The notes under the pieces: model-generated
The model's database searches: none
What the model saw: only the letters and a program-made list of their open reading frames with translations
Told to the model about the DNA's origin: nothing
Position numbers and translations under genes: made by a program
Assembly (NCBI GenBank): GCA_964270895.1
Contig: OZ185449.1
From: Podarcis filfolensis
Taxonomy: Eukaryota
Length of the DNA stretch: 64,000 nucleotides
Strand: one strand, 5' to 3'
Shown: positions 39,031-52,211 of the stretch, in pieces
Numbering within the stretch: position 1 is the first letter of the stretch
How the letters are laid out: the number at the start of each line of letters is the position of its first letter

Positions 39031-39384
39031 TCACACCTGGGTGTAAGTTCCCCTGAAAACAATGATACTTCCTTCTAAGTAGACGTGCAGAGACTTGCAC
39101 TGTCAGTGTATCAAGCCGGTGAAGGGGGATTTAATTTGCCCAGGGAAGAGAAACAGCTCTCCAAGAGAATATTAAATTACTTAATCACCTTATTCTCTTC
39201 ACTGCACAGATGTGTGACATTCTAGTCATAGGCCAAAATAAAATAAAATATGTTATTCCATGTGCACACAATGCATCATTTAGAGCAACCCAGGCAAAAA
39301 GCAAAACAAAACCAACGCAGCGAGGAAGGTTGATGCTTCCATCAAGATAAAGAGCTGTCACAGATCCTTACCTTCTCTTCCCAG

Positions 39385-39521
39385 GTTGGTTCTGAGTGCT
39401 GTGTCTGACTATTTTGCTGCAATGTTTACCAACGATGTCCGTGAAGCAAAACAGGAAGAAATCAAAATGGAAGGAGTGGACCCCGACGCACTGAAAGACC
39501 TTGTGCACTATGCATACACAG
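39385..39521 (+). CDS. KLHL4: KLHL4 coding exon 3 (BTB: [25 protein letters not shown]...YAYTG)
   Basis: Acceptor cttctcttcccag|G, donor G|gtaaac, 137 nt. Matches ORF 39386..39727. Confidence 0.97.
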
Positions 39522-42500
39522 GTAAACTCCCTGCCAACTCTCTTATGCACAGCGGCATCCAAATCAACAAACTGTATTATGCTCTTTCACACAAACAGTT
39601 GTGCATATTTGGAGGCAGCTTGTGCCTGTGCTCATCGTGTTGTGTGAACAAGTCTATTTTTTTAAAAAAGATATTTATTAAAATTTTACAGACAAAAGAA
39701 AGTTACAGAATAAGAAGAGAAAAATAAAAAAAATAAAAAGACAAAGAAAAATACAAAGTACATGAAAAAATAAAAAACAATTAAAAACAGATCAATCTTT
39801 TCATATCTTATATTTCAATTACTTGTTTCCTGACCTCCTCACACCTCCCTTTTTTGTATTCCAGTTCACATAGTTAATTCAGCAAATCCTTTCCCTCTTT
39901 GTTTTTATCTTAATTCTATGTCTTAACATATTATAACTTTATATTTTCATCTAATTATCAGTCCATTTTTACATATTCTTTTTAACCTTATTGCTAAAGC
40001 CACTTCATTTCAATCCAGCATCATTTTAGCATTCATTAATTTTACAATGTTTCTGCAGATAGTCTTTAAACTTCTTCCAATCTTCTTCCACCAACTCTTC
40101 TCCCTGGTCTCGGATTCTGCCAGTCATTTCCGCCAGTTCCAAATAGTCTATCACTTTCATCTGCCATTCTTCCAAGGTGGGTAGATCTTGTGTCTTCCAA
40201 TACTTTGCGATGAGAATTCTTGCTGCTGTTGTTGCATACATAAAGAAAGTTCTGTCCTTCTTTGGCACCAATTGGCCGACCATGCCCAGGAGAAAGGCCT
40301 CTGGTTTCTTCAGGAAGAAGAAACCATACCTTTTTCATTTCATTATAGATCATCTCCCAGAAAGCCATAATCCTTGGGCACGTCCACCAAAGGTGAAAGA
40401 ATGTACCTTCATTTTCTTTACATTTCCAACACTTATTATCGGGCAAATGATATATTTTTGCAAGCTTGACTGGTGTCATGTACCACCTGTATATCATTTT
40501 CATAATATTCTCTCTTAAGGCATTACATGCCGTGAATTTCATACCTGTGGTCCACAACTGTTCCCAGTCAGCAAACATTATGTTATGTCCAACATCTTGT
40601 GCCCATTTTATCATAGCAGATTTAACCGTTTCATCCTGAGTGTTCCATCTCAACAGCAAGTTATACATTCTTGATAATATCTTAGTTTTGGGATCTAACA
40701 GTTCTGTTTCCAATTTTGATTTTTCCACCTGGAAACCAATTTTTTTGTCCAAGTTGTAGACCTCCCTTATTTGATAATAATGAAGCCAATCTCGCACTTT
40801 ATCTTTTAGTTTCTCAAAACTCTGCAATTTCAGTTTGTCACCCTCCTGTTCCAAAATCTCCCAATATTTTGGCCATTTGGCCTCCATATTGAGTTTTTTC
40901 TGAGCCTTCGCTTCCATCGGTGATAGCCACCTTGGGGTTTTATTTTCAAGTAAATCTTTATATCTTGTCCAGACATTAAACAATGCTCTTCTGACAATAT
41001 GGTTTTTAAATGCTTTGTGTGCTTTAACCTTGTCATACCACAGATATGCATGCCACCCAAAAACGTTATTGAAACCTTCTAAATCCAAAATGTCTGTGTT
41101 CTCAAGAAGCAGCCATTCTTTCAACCAGCAGAATGCTGCTGATTCATAATAGAGTTTAAGGTCTGGCAGGGCAAATCCACCTCTATCCTTTGCATCAGTT
41201 AATATTTTAAATTTTATTCTGGGCTTCTTACCCTGCCAGACAAATCTAGAAATATCTCTCTGCCACTTCTTGAAACAATCCATTTTGTCCAAAATTTGCA
41301 ATGATTGAAATAAAAATTACATTCTTGGCAATACATTCATCTTTATAACGGCAATTCGACCAAACAAGGAAAGCTTCAAATTTGACCATATTTCAAGATC
41401 CTTTTTCACTTCTGACCAACATTTCTCGTAGTTATCTTTAAATAAATTTAAGTTTTTAGCGGTCATGTTAACCCCCAGGTATTTTACTTTCTTTACCAGT
41501 GTTAAACCCGTCTCCTTCTGAAACCTCTTTCTCAATCGGTGTTAATTTTTTTTCAAGAACCTTAGTCTTTAACTTGTTCAATTTAAATCCTGCCACTTGA
41601 CCAAATTCCTGAATCAATTCTAATACTCTTTTAGTACTAGATTCTGGCTCCTGTAATGTCAATACTAAGTCATCTGCAGACGCTTTAAGTTTGTACTGTT
41701 TAGCTCCGACCTGAATACCTTTAATCACATGGTCCCTTCTAATCATGTTTAGCAAAACCTCCAGGACCGAAATGAAAAGCAATGGGGAAATTGGGCAGCC
41801 TTGTCGTGTCCCTTTCTCCATCTTAAATTCTTCTGTCACCACGTTGTTAACTATCAATTTCGCCTTTTGTTCTGAATAAATTGCACCTATACCGTTTTCG
41901 AAACCTTGACCAACTCCCATCCCCGGAAGATTTTTCTTCATAAAACTCCAAGAAATATTATCAAAAGCTTTCTCCGCATCAACAAATATCAAAACTGCTT
42001 TAGTATTAATGTTCACTTGCAGTTTCTCTAAAATGTTAATTATGTTTCTCGTGTTATCAGACAAGTGTCTACCCGGGAGAAAGCCAGCTTGGTCTTTGTG
42101 TATCTCCTCAACTAGTACATTTTTCAATCTTTTAGCCAAAATATCTGCAAAAATTTTATAATCCACGTTGAGTAGGGATATGGGGCGGTAGTTCTTAAGT
42201 TGTGTTTTTTCAGACTCAGTTTTCAGTATGAGTGTAATATAAGCTTCCTTCCACGACTCTGGCGCTTTTTTCCCCTCCAAAATTTCATTACAAACCTCCT
42301 TTAGTGGTTGAAATAGCCAATCTTTCAGAGATTTATAATATATTGAGGTTAAACCGTCCGGCCCTGGAGATTTGCCCAACTGCATATTCTGGATGGCACC
42401 TTCCACCTCCTGTTCTGTTATTTTATAATTAAGCATTAACTTATTTTCTTGAGAGATTTTTTGTAATCCATTTGTTCTTAAAAACTGATCTATGTCGGTC

Positions 42501-43165
42501 TCTTTCTGTGGCCCTTGTGTATATAGTTGTTTGAAATATCTCTGGAAGCACTTTCTAATCTCCACTGGATTCTGTATATTCTTTCCTTCCACTTCCAAGT
42601 TTGTAATAGTATTAAGTTTTTGTCTTTTTTTCATCTGCCAAGCTAGCAGTTTCCCACATTTATTAGCCGATTCAAATGTCTTTTGTCTCATCTGCTTGAT
42701 TTTCCATTCTATTTCCTGATTTATCATTTTCATATATTGTACTTGATACAACTTTATTTCTCTCAGAATCTCTTGCGACTTTGGTTTCGCTCTTAATTTC
42801 TTCTCTCCTTCTTTTATTTTCTCCAAAATTTTATCTTTTTTCTCATTTTGAGTTCTCTTCTTTATTGCATTCTGTTGAATCAGAAACCCTCTCATAACCG
42901 CTTTACTTGCGTCCCAGATTACTCTTCTTTCAACCGTAGTATTCAAATTTATCTCAAAGTAGTCTTTCAAAGTTTTTTGGGCCTTCTTAGTAACTTCTGC
43001 ATCTCTAAACAGGGTGTCATTCATCCTCCATCTAAAGGAACCAATTGGTGTTAATTTCATCTCCATTCTCACTGCATTATGGTTGGAGCAAGTTTTAGGG
43101 CAAATTTCCACTTTTCGAATTTTAGGAGCCAATCCTCTAGTTATCCAAATTTGGTCAATTCTTGT

Positions 43166-43382
43166 TACAGATAGGTAGCCGTGTTGGTCTGCCATAGTCA
43201 AAAAAAATATAAAAAATTCTTTCCAGTAGCACGTTAAAGACCAACTAAGTTAGTTCTTGGTATGAGCTTTCGTGTGCATGCACACTTCTTCAGTATCTGA
43301 AGAAGTGTGCATGCACACGAAAGCTCATACCAAGAACTAACTTAGTTGGTCTTTAAGGTGCTACTGGAAAGAATTTTTTTTT
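43166..43382. mobile_element. Penelope-like element remnant (inverted pseudo-LTR pair) inserted in L1 ORF2
   Basis: 16-bp TSD TTTGGTCAATTCTTGT at 43150-43165 and 43383-43398, with 83-bp inverted arms. The sequence (GTAGCCGTGTTGGTCTG...GAAAGCTCATAC...AAGGTGCTAC) resembles reptile Penelope-like termini as I recall them. Confidence 0.8.
43293..43330 (+). ncRNA. Minimal type I hammerhead ribozyme motif
   Basis: GTAT (stem I), CTGAAGA, extra A, GTGTG/CATG/CACAC (stem II), GAAA, GC, TC (cleavage after 43326), ATAC (stem I). Stem III is the palindrome AGCT. Confidence 0.75.
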
Positions 43383-43986
43383 TTTGGTCAATTCTTGTCC
43401 ATGTCATTTTGGCTTCAGAGAAGAAAGTTCCCTCTCTACCCAAGGGGTTCTTAGTTCTCCAAGTATCAATTAAGTCCATGTTGTCAGTCATGTCAAAAAA
43501 AGTTTTTGGTAGTCTGCCATCTTTGGTAATTACCTGTCTTTGTGCCTTATCCATATTTGTGGACACCACTCCGTTCATATCTCCCATCATGATGATGTTA
43601 TACTCCATGTAGTCCAACAATGTCTCATGCAACTTCTTAAAAAAATTCAGATTTCCCCTCATTTGGTGCATAAACTCCTACTATCAAGAATTTCTCTCCT
43701 TGAATTTGTATTTCAATTGCCACAAATCTTCCTTGGTCATCTTTAAAAATAAATTTCGGTGATAGGCTCTCTTTTGCATAGATTACAACTCCTCTCTTTT
43801 TAACTTTGTCTGACGAAATAAACTCTTGGCCCAATCTTTTATTAATCAGTACTTTCCTATGGAGTTTCCTGTAAACAAATCAAGTCCAATTGTTCCTTTT
43901 TCAATAAGTGAAAAACCTTTTTCCTTTTCTCCGGGGAATTAAAACCGTGAATATTCCAACTTAGTAATTGCAGAGACATGGTGTGG

Positions 43987-45096
43987 TTATTTTGCTTTTC
44001 CTCCAACTGCTCCAAGTACTTGTTCTTCTTCTGTCGGTGGTGTCTCTTTCTCTGGTTTATCCAATCCTGAAGGTAGTGATACTAAGTCTAATAATCCTGG
44101 TTTTAATGCTCTTGGCTCTTCTTCTTCTTCGGCTTCTTTTTGTAGATCTTCTTCGTGGTCTCTCAAAAATTTTTCTTTTTCTTCCACTGATCTTATTTTA
44201 GTTTTTTTCCTTTTATAGGTAAAAGAAAGGCCTTGGGGAAACTCCCACCTGAAAACAATTCTGTTTCTTCTCGGCAGGGCCACCAGATCTCTGTAGTTAG
44301 CCCTAAGATCCAATAAATGTTTCGGAATATCCTTGAAGATCTCTACTCTTGATTCTTGTATCTCCAAAGTCTGCTGGAAATGCAGATTCAATATTTTGTC
44401 TCTCTCTTCTTTTGTACGGAGGGTAATCAAACAGTCTCTCACCCTGTTTTTTCTCCCTCCTCTTCTGAGTCTAAAGGCACTTACTATCTTAAAATCTTGC
44501 TTAGCATCCAGGTTCAAAAAGTCTGCAAATTCCTGCGTAAGAAAGTCACTTAAACTGTCTTTTTCAAGTTCAGGTACTGCCCTGATCCTTAAATTAATCT
44601 GTTTTTCCTTAAGCTCAATCATAGACAGAAGCGTCCTGTGGTCCTCAAGTTGTTTACATATCGGTGTAATCTTTTCCTCCACAGCCGAAGCTTTTTCCTG
44701 TGCTTCCTCAGCTGCCTTTTGGTTCAAAGTAGATTTTTGCAGCAGTCTTTCAATGGATTCTGTGTTTGAGTTCACCTTTTGCCCCAAACTATTAATGCTG
44801 GTAGTGTTTTGGTCGATTTTAGTTGTTTGTTCAGTAACTTGATTACTTAATTTTTCCAAGGTTTCATAAATTTTGCTTAATACTGAAGTAAAACTCTCTT
44901 CAGATGCCACTCCTTTAGGCCCAACTTGTACAGGATCCTTTCCTTGTGTTGCAGTTTGTGCTGCAGTTTGTGCAGGGTCTTTTCCTTGTGGTACTGGGGG
45001 GGCGGATGCGGATGCTCTGCGCTGCTGCAGTATGCTGGTCTGTGTCAGTCTAACCTTACCCGATCTTGTTGTCTTTTCCTGAGGCAAGTCTGCCAT
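43987..45096 (-). CDS. L1 ORF1p (369 aa; coiled coil, RRM, CTD), open frame
   Basis: Heptad-rich central region, then NLRIRAVPE, IFKDIP and FPQGLSF motifs typical of L1 ORF1p. Stop lies 7 nt before the ORF2 ATG. Confidence 0.88.
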   Translation of the reverse strand: MADLPQEKTTRSGKVRLTQTSILQQRRASASAPPVPQGKDPAQTAAQTATQGKDPVQVGPKGVASEESFTSVLSKIYETLEKLSNQVTEQTTKIDQNTTSINSLGQKVNSNTESIERLLQKSTLNQKAAEEAQEKASAVEEKITPICKQLEDHRTLLSMIELKEKQINLRIRAVPELEKDSLSDFLTQEFADFLNLDAKQDFKIVSAFRLRRGGRKNRVRDCLITLRTKEERDKILNLHFQQTLEIQESRVEIFKDIPKHLLDLRANYRDLVALPRRNRIVFRWEFPQGLSFTYKRKKTKIRSVEEKEKFLRDHEEDLQKEAEEEEEPRALKPGLLDLVSLPSGLDKPEKETPPTEEEQVLGAVGGKAK

Positions 45097-46123
45097 AACA
45101 CTTTATCTGAGGATCAAGGTCAGTCCCACGGCTCGTAGCTTGTTTTGCAGTGGAAATTTCCCTGGCCAGTTAGCAATGGAAAATTCCCCAACTAGTTGTA
45201 ACAATTTCAGTGTTCCTCTAGGGGGACACAGTAACAGTCAATGGTAACAATATAATGTCTTTCCCAATTTTCCAGAGTCCCCCTTCAACAAAATAAGCAA
45301 CAGTTTCAAGTCCAAAGAAGCCCTTCAGAATAAAAGTATCTCCCTTGCAGAGTTAACATTGTCCATAAACAGTGCATCTCTCAATACTGCGGTTTTATTA
45401 ATCCTCAAGGATCCCAAGGATTAAGTGGTGGTCTTTATTCCCTTTACTCTCCTCTTTTTTTGCAGGCAAAAAATACTTTCTCCTCTTCCCTCCCCTCTCC
45501 TGCAATTCAGGGGGGGGGGGAATTCTTTTAGTCCGATGTTAGGATTTAAGTCCTTTTAAACACAACTCTCCAGGTCTTAGCTTAAAGAGTCTTTGCTTTG
45601 ATCTATATACAGAAAACAGAAGGCGGACTTCCTGTTTACGCCTTCCCGCTTCGGTGCCAAATTAATCCTTTTTTTCTCTTGTATTCCACGATCTTTAAAC
45701 TTAACCTATTCACGGGTAGTTGTTTGTTAGCCGAATTGTCACAGGAAAAAGGTCAGCGCTCTCCGGCAACAGCTGTGCGGCTTCACTCCACGGAAAAAGC
45801 AGTTGGCTCTCAGCACCGCGCCAAACTCCCCATTACGCTCCGGAGCCCCTTGCGGGGTTTCCTCGCAAATAGGGGGCGCTAAGGGTGCCCGCCGAGTCCC
45901 ATGGTCACAGGCTTCTCCCGCCTGTGATTTTCAAGGGGGTCCCCGCTTCGCTGTAGCGGCAAGACCCAATTTCCGCGGAGTTACTCCCTCGAAGTTAGAG
46001 GGAATCCGCCATTGCCGATAGCGCCGCCTCCGGAAGTCCGTGAACATGTCTAATATCTTGTGCAGTCACAAGAACACTTTCTTTGAGTTTCCCCCACAAA
46101 AAAAGAACAATCCATTTTCATGC

Positions 46124-46124
46124 A

Positions 46125-46151
<27 letters not shown>
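46124..46151. repeat. (CT)n microsatellite just upstream of the exon 4 acceptor
   Basis: Direct reading. Confidence 0.95.
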
Positions 46152-46156
<5 letters not shown>

Positions 46157-46171
46157 TATTAAACCATACAG

Positions 46172-46368
46172 GTGTCTTGGAACTCAAAGAAGAAACAATT
46201 GAAAGCTTGCTGGCCGCCGCTTGCCTCCTTCAGCTTTCACAAGTCATTGAAGTCTGCTGCAACTTTCTCGTGAAGCAGCTCCATCCATCAAACTGTTTAG
46301 GGATTCGGTCCTTCGGAGATGCTCAGGGGTGCGCAGAACTCCTGCGGGTGGCGCACGTCTACACTATG
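46172..46368 (+). CDS. KLHL4: KLHL4 coding exon 4 (end of BTB, start of BACK: [18 protein letters not shown])
   Basis: Acceptor ccatacag|GT, donor ATG|gtgagg, 197 nt. Frame is continuous with exon 3. Confidence 0.96.
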
Positions 46369-46616
46369 GTGAGGTCAAAGGAACAAGATTCCTGGAACTA
46401 ACGGCTGGGAGGTTAAAGCTAGAAAGGAACTGGCAAGTTGTGGTTGTGGTGGCAAATGGCTACAACAAGATTAAATGCCCAAGAAATCTGTACAGGGCAC
46501 CATCAAGGTAGAACATTGCAGCACATATCCAGGGCCCAGCTCAGCAGAATGAGTGACATGGCCTGTAAGCTGAGCAAGGCTGGCTCACCACTTTTTAAAG
46601 TATGTAAAATAGTATA

Positions 46617-50377: not shown

Positions 50378-50590
50378 GAACACTTCACTGAGGTAATAAA
50401 GAACCAGGAATTTCTCTTGCTGCCTGCTGGTGAAATTGCTAAGCTCCTGTCAAGTGATGACATCAATGTCCCAGATGAAGAATCCATATTCAAGGCATTG
50501 ATGTTGTGGGTTCGGCATGACTTGCAACCCAGGCAGCGGGAGCTCGGAATGCTTCTCTCCTACATCCGATTGCCTTTGCTGTCCCCACAG
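50378..50590 (+). CDS. KLHL4: KLHL4 coding exon 5 (BACK: [16 protein letters not shown]...IRLPLLSPQ)
   Basis: Acceptor ttcattag|GAA, donor CAG|gtaggc, 213 nt. Confidence 0.96.
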
Positions 50591-52211
50591 GTAGGCCTCT
50601 GGATAGAATGCCTGAGAGATTTGATTTCTTTGAATCCTTATGCACACTGACCTGATCCACACCTCCAGAGTAAATGTGCGGCTTGAAACATCATTATCCT
50701 GCTGATTTTGTGCTTCCCTAGATTTTGTGATACAGTTTTCAGCTCCAAACCTCCTGTTGTTATGACTGTTATTAATTTTTATTTTGTTTAACTTATTTTG
50801 AACCTACTCTTCATTGGTCACACAATCCTGGAGAGAGCAATCACATTTCAAATAATATTTCATTGAAATGCACCTAATGTGAAAATCAAACCCTACACTA
50901 GCAACTAGGACTAAGTGATTCAGATAACACTGAAATGTGAAGCCTACCTAATCTGCATTTTCTGAAATAGCGTGTGGACTGAAACACAACCATATTTGAA
51001 ATTCAGACTTGCATGAATTTTGCAATGAAGGTCTCCAGCCAAGTAATGTGCAAAAATTCATATACTCACGTATATTTCAAATGCATATATATAGAGATTA
51101 TTTTTATTAAAAAATGCACTGTATTAGGGGAAATTGCTTTGCAAAATGTAACGATGGGGGCGGGATGTAGAAAAGTATAAAAATGTGTATACTGGAATAC
51201 ATTTTCAATAAAATGTTGATGAACCCTTCACAATCTGATGTGGAAATGTGGATAAAAACTGAAGCTGACATATTTGTTATATCAGCCAAATGAGGGCACC
51301 ATTCTAACAAAAGAGTTGGGTGAATAGCCATGTTTTTACCTTTGGTATGGCTTGCACCGAGTAAAAACCTTCCACTAGCAATTAGTTCAGTTTAATGTTT
51401 GAAGGCCCCCTCCCCAAGGATGATTATGGGACTGTATTCCTTTCATTAGAAGACAATAGGGATATGTCAGCAATCTTGGCACTTAGGTTGGAGCCAAAGC
51501 TGGAGGCACCAGAGAGCAGAAGCTGGCCAGGTCTGGTGGTAAATCATATGGCACCTCCCATTGGAGACCAGGCTGTGCTTGTGTGAGAAACTGTGAGTGC
51601 AATTGTTTCCTATAATTCCCCCATCCAGACATCCCAGTAGTATCATAGGATCATCAGACCATGGGGAAGTGCTTTGGTAATGCAGTGACGAGGTCAAATT
51701 CTGGGGATAAGAGATGGGAGACAATCTTCCAAGCTATGACAAGAAGGTTGAGGATGATAGGGAGTGGGATTTGGTTGTAGGAAGCTTGACAGCAGTTCCC
51801 CAAGCCAGGAGTCAGCATGGTTAGGCATCTACTGGAGTTCATGCACCAGCAGGGAAGTTCACGGCTGACCTGCCAACTTCATTCCCCAAAATTGCAGTTG
51901 AATTCCAACATTTTGTTTAGTCTTGTGTGTGCAAACTAATATGCATAGAAGCCCATGCAACCTGAATCCTGGGTCCTGTTGGCCCACTTGCCAACCCTCT
52001 CCTCCCTTAGCCAACTCCAGGTGTGGAAGAGGAGGAGGATCAGTAGCAGCAACACCAGCCGTGAGGAGGATTTCCGATGGCTGTCTCAGGGTCCCCACTA
52101 ATTATTATGGTGCCTTGTGGCCCATAACATCTGGAGAAAGACTTGGCTGATATATCTAGAAATGACCTTTTGATTACATCAATATGAACACCAAGACTTT
52201 GTATGTCTCAG

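Follow-up and report, generated by a model that had tools for sequence, protein, structure and literature searches.

The insertion and its surroundings

The window, meaning the whole stretch of 64,000 nucleotides (64 kb) that was analysed, carries on its + strand the exons of a BTB-BACK-Kelch gene (39284-59457) whose peptides look like those of the KLHL1/4/5 group. The BTB domain of this gene is split by an intron of roughly 6.5 kb, and within that intron a LINE copy lies antisense to the host (40066-45096, - strand), with open frames of 369, 109, 577 (RVT_1) and 411 aa. The LINE is itself interrupted by a palindromic insert whose right arm has a hammerhead ribozyme motif at its inner end, the 3' ends of both arms pointing outward. 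A sequence-only reading of the same DNA had placed the motif in a KLHL4 intron and in the sense of the host pre-mRNA, a placement that our domain profiles bear out for a KLHL-type gene: its exons for BTB, BACK and Kelch are all found on the + strand, which is the host sense strand, and the site falls between the BTB exons. The features of the locus are as follows.

39284-39724 (+): BTB profile positions 11-80 (profile match)
Between the exons in 39284-46398 (+): host intron splitting the BTB domain, roughly 6.5 kb (domain profiles)
40066-41301, 43342-43671 and 43987-45096 (-): further LINE-side open reading frames, on both sides of the insert (ORF list)
41468-43201 (-): reverse-transcriptase open reading frame of the interrupted LINE, 577 aa (Pfam RVT_1, E = 4.3e-34)
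43153-43165: left copy of the target-site duplication, 13 bp, GGTCAATTCTTGT, identical to 43386-43398
43166-43385: whole insert, 220 bp, with an exact 13-bp direct repeat on both sides
43166-43199 (-): 34-nt "tail", an extra 3'-terminal segment with no counterpart in the right arm
43200-43216 (-): run rich in A (in T on the element's sense strand) whose length varies across the family (dip in depth; indels and loose ends at 43204-43211)
43205-43293 (-): left arm, holding the element's 3' part as an inverted copy truncated at its 5' end (89-nt inverted repeat, 97%)
43294-43296 (+): spacer TAT, 3 nt, the rest of the family's GTAT helix I strand in the + copy (family reads, BLAST)
43297-43385 (+): right arm, a 5'-truncated copy that ends in a T-run (43374-43385, 12 T) and has no tail (inverted repeat comparison)
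43386-43398: right copy of the target-site duplication, 13 bp, identical to 43153-43165
46087-46398 (+): BTB profile positions 72-109 (profile match)
50378-50647 (+): BACK (profile match)
52-59 kb (+): five Kelch-repeat exons (profile match)

The two arms (43205-43293 and 43297-43385) form an inverted repeat of 89 nt that is 97% complementary around a 3-nt spacer; outside homopolymers they differ at 43233 alone, and the A/T run holds two further differences. Loose ends of DNA contigs from paralogous LINE copies join 43165 straight to the sequence after 43398; because these LINE copies are uninterrupted, they prove both the insertion and the duplication of its target site. DNA word depth over the tail block was about one-third of that over the hammerhead block, indicating that the tail is optional and is carried by only a fraction of copies.

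Insertions of Penelope-like elements (PLEs) are 5'-truncated, often with an inverted 5'-truncated copy at their 5' end, and bear a tail of 30-40 bp at one end only (Craig et al. 2021, PMC8557442); Frangieh et al. (2024, PMC11167929) trace the tail to a pair of adjacent start sites for reverse transcription. Our locus has a target-site duplication and 5' truncation, a 5'-truncated copy adjoins it in inverted orientation, and a tail is present on one side alone; the layout of truncated copy, inverted truncated copy and one-sided tail is the known signature of a PLE insertion. The locus shares with the insertions described by Craig et al. the 5' truncation, the head-to-head inverted copy, the tail at one end and the position of the hammerhead near the 3' end, whereas the present copy is 220 bp long and has neither an open reading frame nor a tandem pLTR. 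The reverse-transcriptase frame next to the insert belongs to the interrupted LINE and not to the hammerhead family. By its insertion anatomy and ribozyme type the family is probably a PLE; no copy with an RT/GIY-YIG frame lies in the 64-kb window.

Animal non-LTR retrozymes (PMC7229834; bioRxiv 10.64898/2026.07.22.740005) are likewise short non-coding units with type I hammerheads and have PLE pLTRs as relatives, but they are arranged as head-to-tail tandems that give circular RNAs and are reported to be depleted from introns, whereas here a single inverted pair lies in an intron. No retrozyme tandem was found in the 64-kb window, which holds two copies only, in inverted orientation. Searches of the window with a pattern allowing 3 mismatches, with a hammerhead descriptor and with sensitive BLAST revealed no longer or further copies.

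The hammerhead motif and its published relatives

Read directly from the sequence, positions 43293-43330 on the + strand hold 38 nt, GTAT-CTGAAGA-A-GTGTGCATGCACAC-GAAA-GC-TC-ATAC, and on re-reading these letters were identical to those given in the sequence-only reading. The motif and its mirror copy are made up as follows.

43293-43330 (+): complete PLE-type minimal hammerhead motif (sequence and descriptor; plan as in PMC4209133 and the Poseidon_Ac tandem junction)
43293-43296 (+): helix I, strand 2.4-2.1, GUAU, pairing with AUAC at 43327-43330
43297-43303 (+): core C3-A9, CTGAAGA (sequence)
43304 (+): extra A between A9 and 10.1, unpaired and bulged (sequence)
43305-43318 (+): helix II, 5 bp with loop CAUG, closed by the G10.1-C11.1 pair (G43305-C43318; sequence and fold)
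43319-43321 (+): G12-A14, GAA (sequence)
43322-43325 (+): A15.1-GC-U16.1, a palindromic AGCU in place of helix III (sequence)
43326 (+): C17, with the predicted cut between 43326 and 43327
43327-43330 (+): helix I, strand 1.1-1.4, AUAC
43260-43293 (-): mirror hammerhead core without helix I (exact second match of the 34-nt core)

Position C17 coincides with the UC cleavage site proposed earlier, after 43326. We scanned both strands of the 64-kb window with a descriptor of our own for minimal hammerheads (helices I and II of 4 bp or longer, the boxes CUGANGA, GAAA and UH, a bulge of 0-1 nt and a palindromic insert) and obtained a single match, at 43293-43330. In dinucleotide-preserving shuffles the descriptor matched in none of 200 when helices of at least 4 bp were required and twice in 200 when 3 bp sufficed. 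With one match in the window and none in the shuffles at the stricter setting, the motif is real and a chance match is ruled out. A scan with hammerhead models, which the sequence-only reading had proposed as a check, gave a divided answer: the Rfam models (type I, II, III, HH9 and HH10) returned no hammerhead match at E <= 10 from a 5-kb and a 71-nt query, and our descriptor found exactly the site. We attribute the missing Rfam match to the helix III and loops that these models expect and minimal forms lack, and it is therefore weak evidence against the motif. The copy on the - strand had been said to be without stem I, and this was upheld: AUAG stands there opposite AUAC, and the descriptor missed this core even when helix I was cut to 2 bp.

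The class named in the sequence-only reading, a Penelope-type minimal type I hammerhead, agrees with the hallmarks reported for PLE minimal hammerheads by Cervera & de la Pena (2014, PMC4209133), two of which (the A inserted behind A9 and the self-complementary AGCU) it had also pointed out. According to that work, these ribozymes combine a 4-5-bp helix I with a larger helix II and have an unpaired base between A9 and 10.1, a conserved G10.1-C11.1 pair and a palindromic 15.2-16.2 that replaces helix III; they occur in thousands of copies, mostly solitary with some paired on opposite strands, are present in reptiles, and show very low activity, in dimers only. The type I core, 4-bp helix I, bulge, G10.1-C11.1 pair and palindromic 15.2-16.2 are each present in our motif, which shares with the published ones the CUGANGA, GAAA and UH boxes, an AGCU suited to a double hammerhead, dispersal of truncated copies by the thousand and close pairs on opposite strands, but differs in that its helix II is a 14-nt palindrome. 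The extra unpaired base at the same core position is the sole feature in common with the CChMVd viroid hammerhead (De la Pena & Flores 2001, cited in PMC4209133), to which the earlier reading had compared it; that ribozyme is of type III, with full helices and loop-loop contacts.

The tandem junction of Poseidon_Ac from Anolis carolinensis (Repbase consensus) reads CUGAGGA, U, a 6-bp helix II, GAAA, CG and UC, with a short helix I, and its hammerhead cleaves only when the element's protein is present, mutants of C3 and G8 being inactive (PMC11167929). No RNA-seq reads end at its cut site (PMC11167929). Our family follows the same plan, with a tail of the kind ascribed to two reverse-transcription start sites and likewise no pile-up of read ends at the cut site, whereas its helices, bulge, N7 and palindromic dinucleotide differ in sequence. 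The PAc open reading frame starts at helix II; here, by contrast, the ATG of loop II opens a frame of 9 codons only. Poseidon_Ac itself was rejected as the source, since 11-14-nt strings of the element are absent from the supplement of the PAc paper and the PAc consensus lacks the family sequence. Full-text searches with 18-21-nt strings of the element did not find its exact sequence in the searchable literature. The kind of locus (PLE minimal hammerhead, inverted truncated insertion and tail) is already published, the comparison with published reptile motifs being one of architecture and not of letters.

The repeat family in public reads

To characterize the family we placed reads on 43120-43315 at 88% likeness, using the raw reads of two RNA runs and the contigs of two DNA runs from two related organisms, the DNA and RNA runs coming from different organisms. 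Runs of a sister species shared 30-43% of the words of the locus. The placement covered the left half of the palindrome and 19 nt of the right arm, and sites of the motif were read at their mirrored positions in the left arm. The element is extremely abundant, with thousands of family copies: the DNA runs gave 3,531 and 5,827 contig pieces and the RNA runs about 1,040 reads per 12.8 million. Depth rose about 40-fold at 43162-43166 and was back to background at 43294. The motif that the sequence-only reading described as hidden in an intron is in this sense one ordinary copy among thousands.

About 99% of RNA reads continued beyond the part of the locus that they fit. At 43293, the overhang consensus (423 and 343 reads, with agreement of 0.75 and 0.66) has a reverse complement that ends in ...CAGTGTAT directly 5' of CTGAAGA, and BLAST aligned 43293-43296 to the GTAT of the family's upstream sequence. 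The GTAT on the 5' side of helix I thus comes from the family's own sequence, and the + copy kept it only because it is 3-4 nt longer than the inverted copy. As most copies continue upstream of the palindrome centre, the palindrome is not the unit of the family.

The family's upstream sequence (...ACTTCTGTTTCAG TGTAT CTGAAGAAGT...) is an imperfect inverted repeat centred at the turning point of the locus palindrome. In predicted folds of the usual family context this upstream repeat sequesters the CUGAAGA box, and the pair probability of helix I is 0.01. Such a repeat may serve the element as an attenuator of its own, or it may be a place where cDNA turn-back is frequent.

Within the core (C3-A9), no variant reached 5% in family reads at the mirrored positions. 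The only motif sites that varied by at least 5% in the DNA runs were the CpG C11.1/G12 and C17, where 7-17% of copies carry C11.1>U and 10-22% carry G12>A, both by CpG decay, and C17>U is present in 8-22%. A1.3>G, which would keep a G-U pair, was seen at about 5% in RNA reads only. No paired variation of at least 5% that would compensate within helices I and II was found in the family, which is young and has few variable sites. This pattern of variation shows the neutral decay of a young family, and it is neutral as to selection on the ribozyme. Across families, Poseidon_Ac has different helices around the same core.

Folding, origin of the locus and rival readings

We then considered what this copy could do in the host transcript. 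The RNA of the insert was predicted to fold into a single hairpin of -158 kcal/mol (z = -24.7), and forcing helices I and II within it cost a predicted 56.5 kcal/mol, with pair probabilities near 1e-40. In the sense transcript, the masking antisense arm is transcribed before the motif, on its 5' side. For the isolated 38-mer, the predicted hammerhead fold was in effect the minimum-energy structure (-6.0 versus -6.8 kcal/mol). Joining two 38-mers into a double hammerhead via AGCU yielded a nested structure of -11.1 kcal/mol, compared to -13.6 kcal/mol for two separate monomers and -30.6 kcal/mol for a dimer through the palindromic helix II (all predicted). Because helix II is itself a 14-nt palindrome, a non-productive intermolecular duplex is favoured. 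RNA ends did not pile up at the cut site in the two RNA runs, taken family-wide, where depth was flat across 43260-43266; this test registers only sites at which at least a fifth of molecules begin or end, and low-level cleavage falls below its threshold. Taken together, the energetics and the read evidence suggest that the copy is almost certainly catalytically inert in the host pre-mRNA, because the hairpin buries the motif and there is no sense partner within 64 kb. Helicases or ADAR editing could, in principle, loosen the hairpin.

On this evidence we favour, with a probability of about 0.86, the reading that the locus holds a masked PLE-family hammerhead from near the element's 3' end, inert here, in a palindromic insertion into a LINE within an intron. 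A 5'-truncated copy of the element's 3' part would have been reverse-transcribed into the LINE inside the intron of the KLHL gene, and an inverted 5'-truncated copy would have been made simultaneously, the simplest way being for the reverse transcriptase to turn back on its own cDNA. The product would be the head-to-head palindrome with outward 3' ends, the 3-nt spacer, the 13-bp duplication and the PLE-specific tail on one side. Turn-back is the simplest route because the two copies break off no more than 3 nt apart while family copies normally run on upstream; two independent target-primed cDNAs that happened to meet within 3 nt are less likely, though PAc can extend both target strands in vitro (PMC11167929). 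In the parent element, as the literature describes it, the hammerhead would process tandem transcripts, with the AGCU of one unit pairing with that of the next and the helix I strands swapped, and the double hammerhead is thought to be helped by the element's own protein. In the host, the pre-mRNA probably zips into an 89-bp duplex that leaves this copy no ribozyme role, and its likely fate would be that of any long intronic hairpin, A-to-I editing included.

The sequence-only reading had suggested that the motif could self-cleave as a dimer in the KLHL pre-mRNA, and a working intronic ribozyme of this kind, one that cuts as a dimer or with help from a protein and thereby affects the host transcript, would account for the intact core on the sense strand and for a helix I kept on that strand only; PLE hammerheads can, moreover, cleave with the help of protein (PMC11167929). 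Our results nevertheless make it highly improbable. The antisense arm just upstream locks the motif into the -158 kcal/mol hairpin, from which it could escape only at a penalty of 56.5 kcal/mol; no second sense copy lies within the 64-kb window to act as a partner; the double hammerhead is predicted to be weak (-11.1 kcal/mol) beside the competing helix II duplex (-30.6 kcal/mol); and family-wide RNA reads have no accumulated ends at the cut site. The presence of helix I on the + strand is explained by the point at which the cDNA turned back and not by selection, and with thousands of dispersed copies and arms that differ at 1 non-homopolymer site, the locus is a young insertion and no conserved host feature. 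A conditional form of the idea, in which hammerheads in PLE palindromes are freed by ADAR editing or a helicase and cut host pre-mRNA with a trans partner or the PLE protein, we regard as scarcely probable; if it were true, retroelement activity would feed back on host genes such as the KLHL gene. The sequence-only reading was therefore right as to class and strand, and its functional inference is unsupported: the motif belongs to an abundant retroelement, and the copy seen here is ordinary and masked. The family nonetheless provides a natural series of one minimal hammerhead, free or locked in hairpins of different lengths, that could be used to test cleavage by weak ribozymes in vivo.

Two other readings set the ribozyme aside. 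One takes the hairpin as the relevant structure, a long double-stranded RNA that is edited by ADAR or diced and serves as a source of proto-miRNAs or endo-siRNAs; the 89-bp duplex, matches to Rfam miRNA-precursor models with E-values down to 1e-12 and strand-specific A>G changes found only in RNA among family reads all speak for it. However, the miRNA matches score far below gathering (66.5 versus 211, 63.7 versus 90 and 62 versus 95) and are spread over unrelated plant and animal families, as generic hairpin matches would be, so that a miRNA gene was rejected; editing is unproven, the DNA and RNA runs being from different organisms; and the reading describes a fate of the RNA that is compatible with a PLE insertion and does not replace it. 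As a replacement we consider it unlikely. The other supposes that a hammerhead-like string arose by chance in a foldback DNA transposon (MITE) or in a palindrome generated by replication, unrelated to Penelope, and the terminal inverted symmetry and target-site duplication do bear a superficial likeness to one. It is barely credible given that family reads leave the locus at the palindrome centre into shared upstream sequence, that the ends are asymmetric, one having a tail and the other a T-run, that the motif was absent from 200 shuffles, and that it shows four features which lie outside the published search descriptor and yet recur in PLE hammerheads; the MITE was rejected on the first two of these grounds. 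Palindromes of this genome that contain an intact hammerhead core are best read as Penelope-type insertions and not as host-gene ribozymes or microRNA genes.

The strand-specific changes were A>G at 43247, 43248, 43252 and 43262, seen only in reads with the first mate on the - strand and at 8-12% in RNA versus <0.3% in DNA contigs, and T>C at 43235 and 43246, seen in RNA reads mainly of the opposite direction. If double-stranded RNA underwent A-to-I editing, a dUTP-stranded library would be expected to show such a pattern, and with DNA and RNA runs from different organisms we treat it as a lead. The pattern fits the hairpin as the form that exists in cells, and the RNA reads hint that such hairpins undergo A-to-I editing in a non-mammalian vertebrate.

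Two further observations concern particular family copies. Overhangs at 43162 and 43204 were highly uniform (agreement of 0.9-0.96 among 45-84 reads), which indicates that one or two particular copies are strongly expressed in the sampled tissue. At 43188, T>G occurred in 7-20% of RNA reads in one direction only and at about 0.02% of DNA depth; this does not have the A-to-I pattern and may reflect one highly expressed copy or an artefact.
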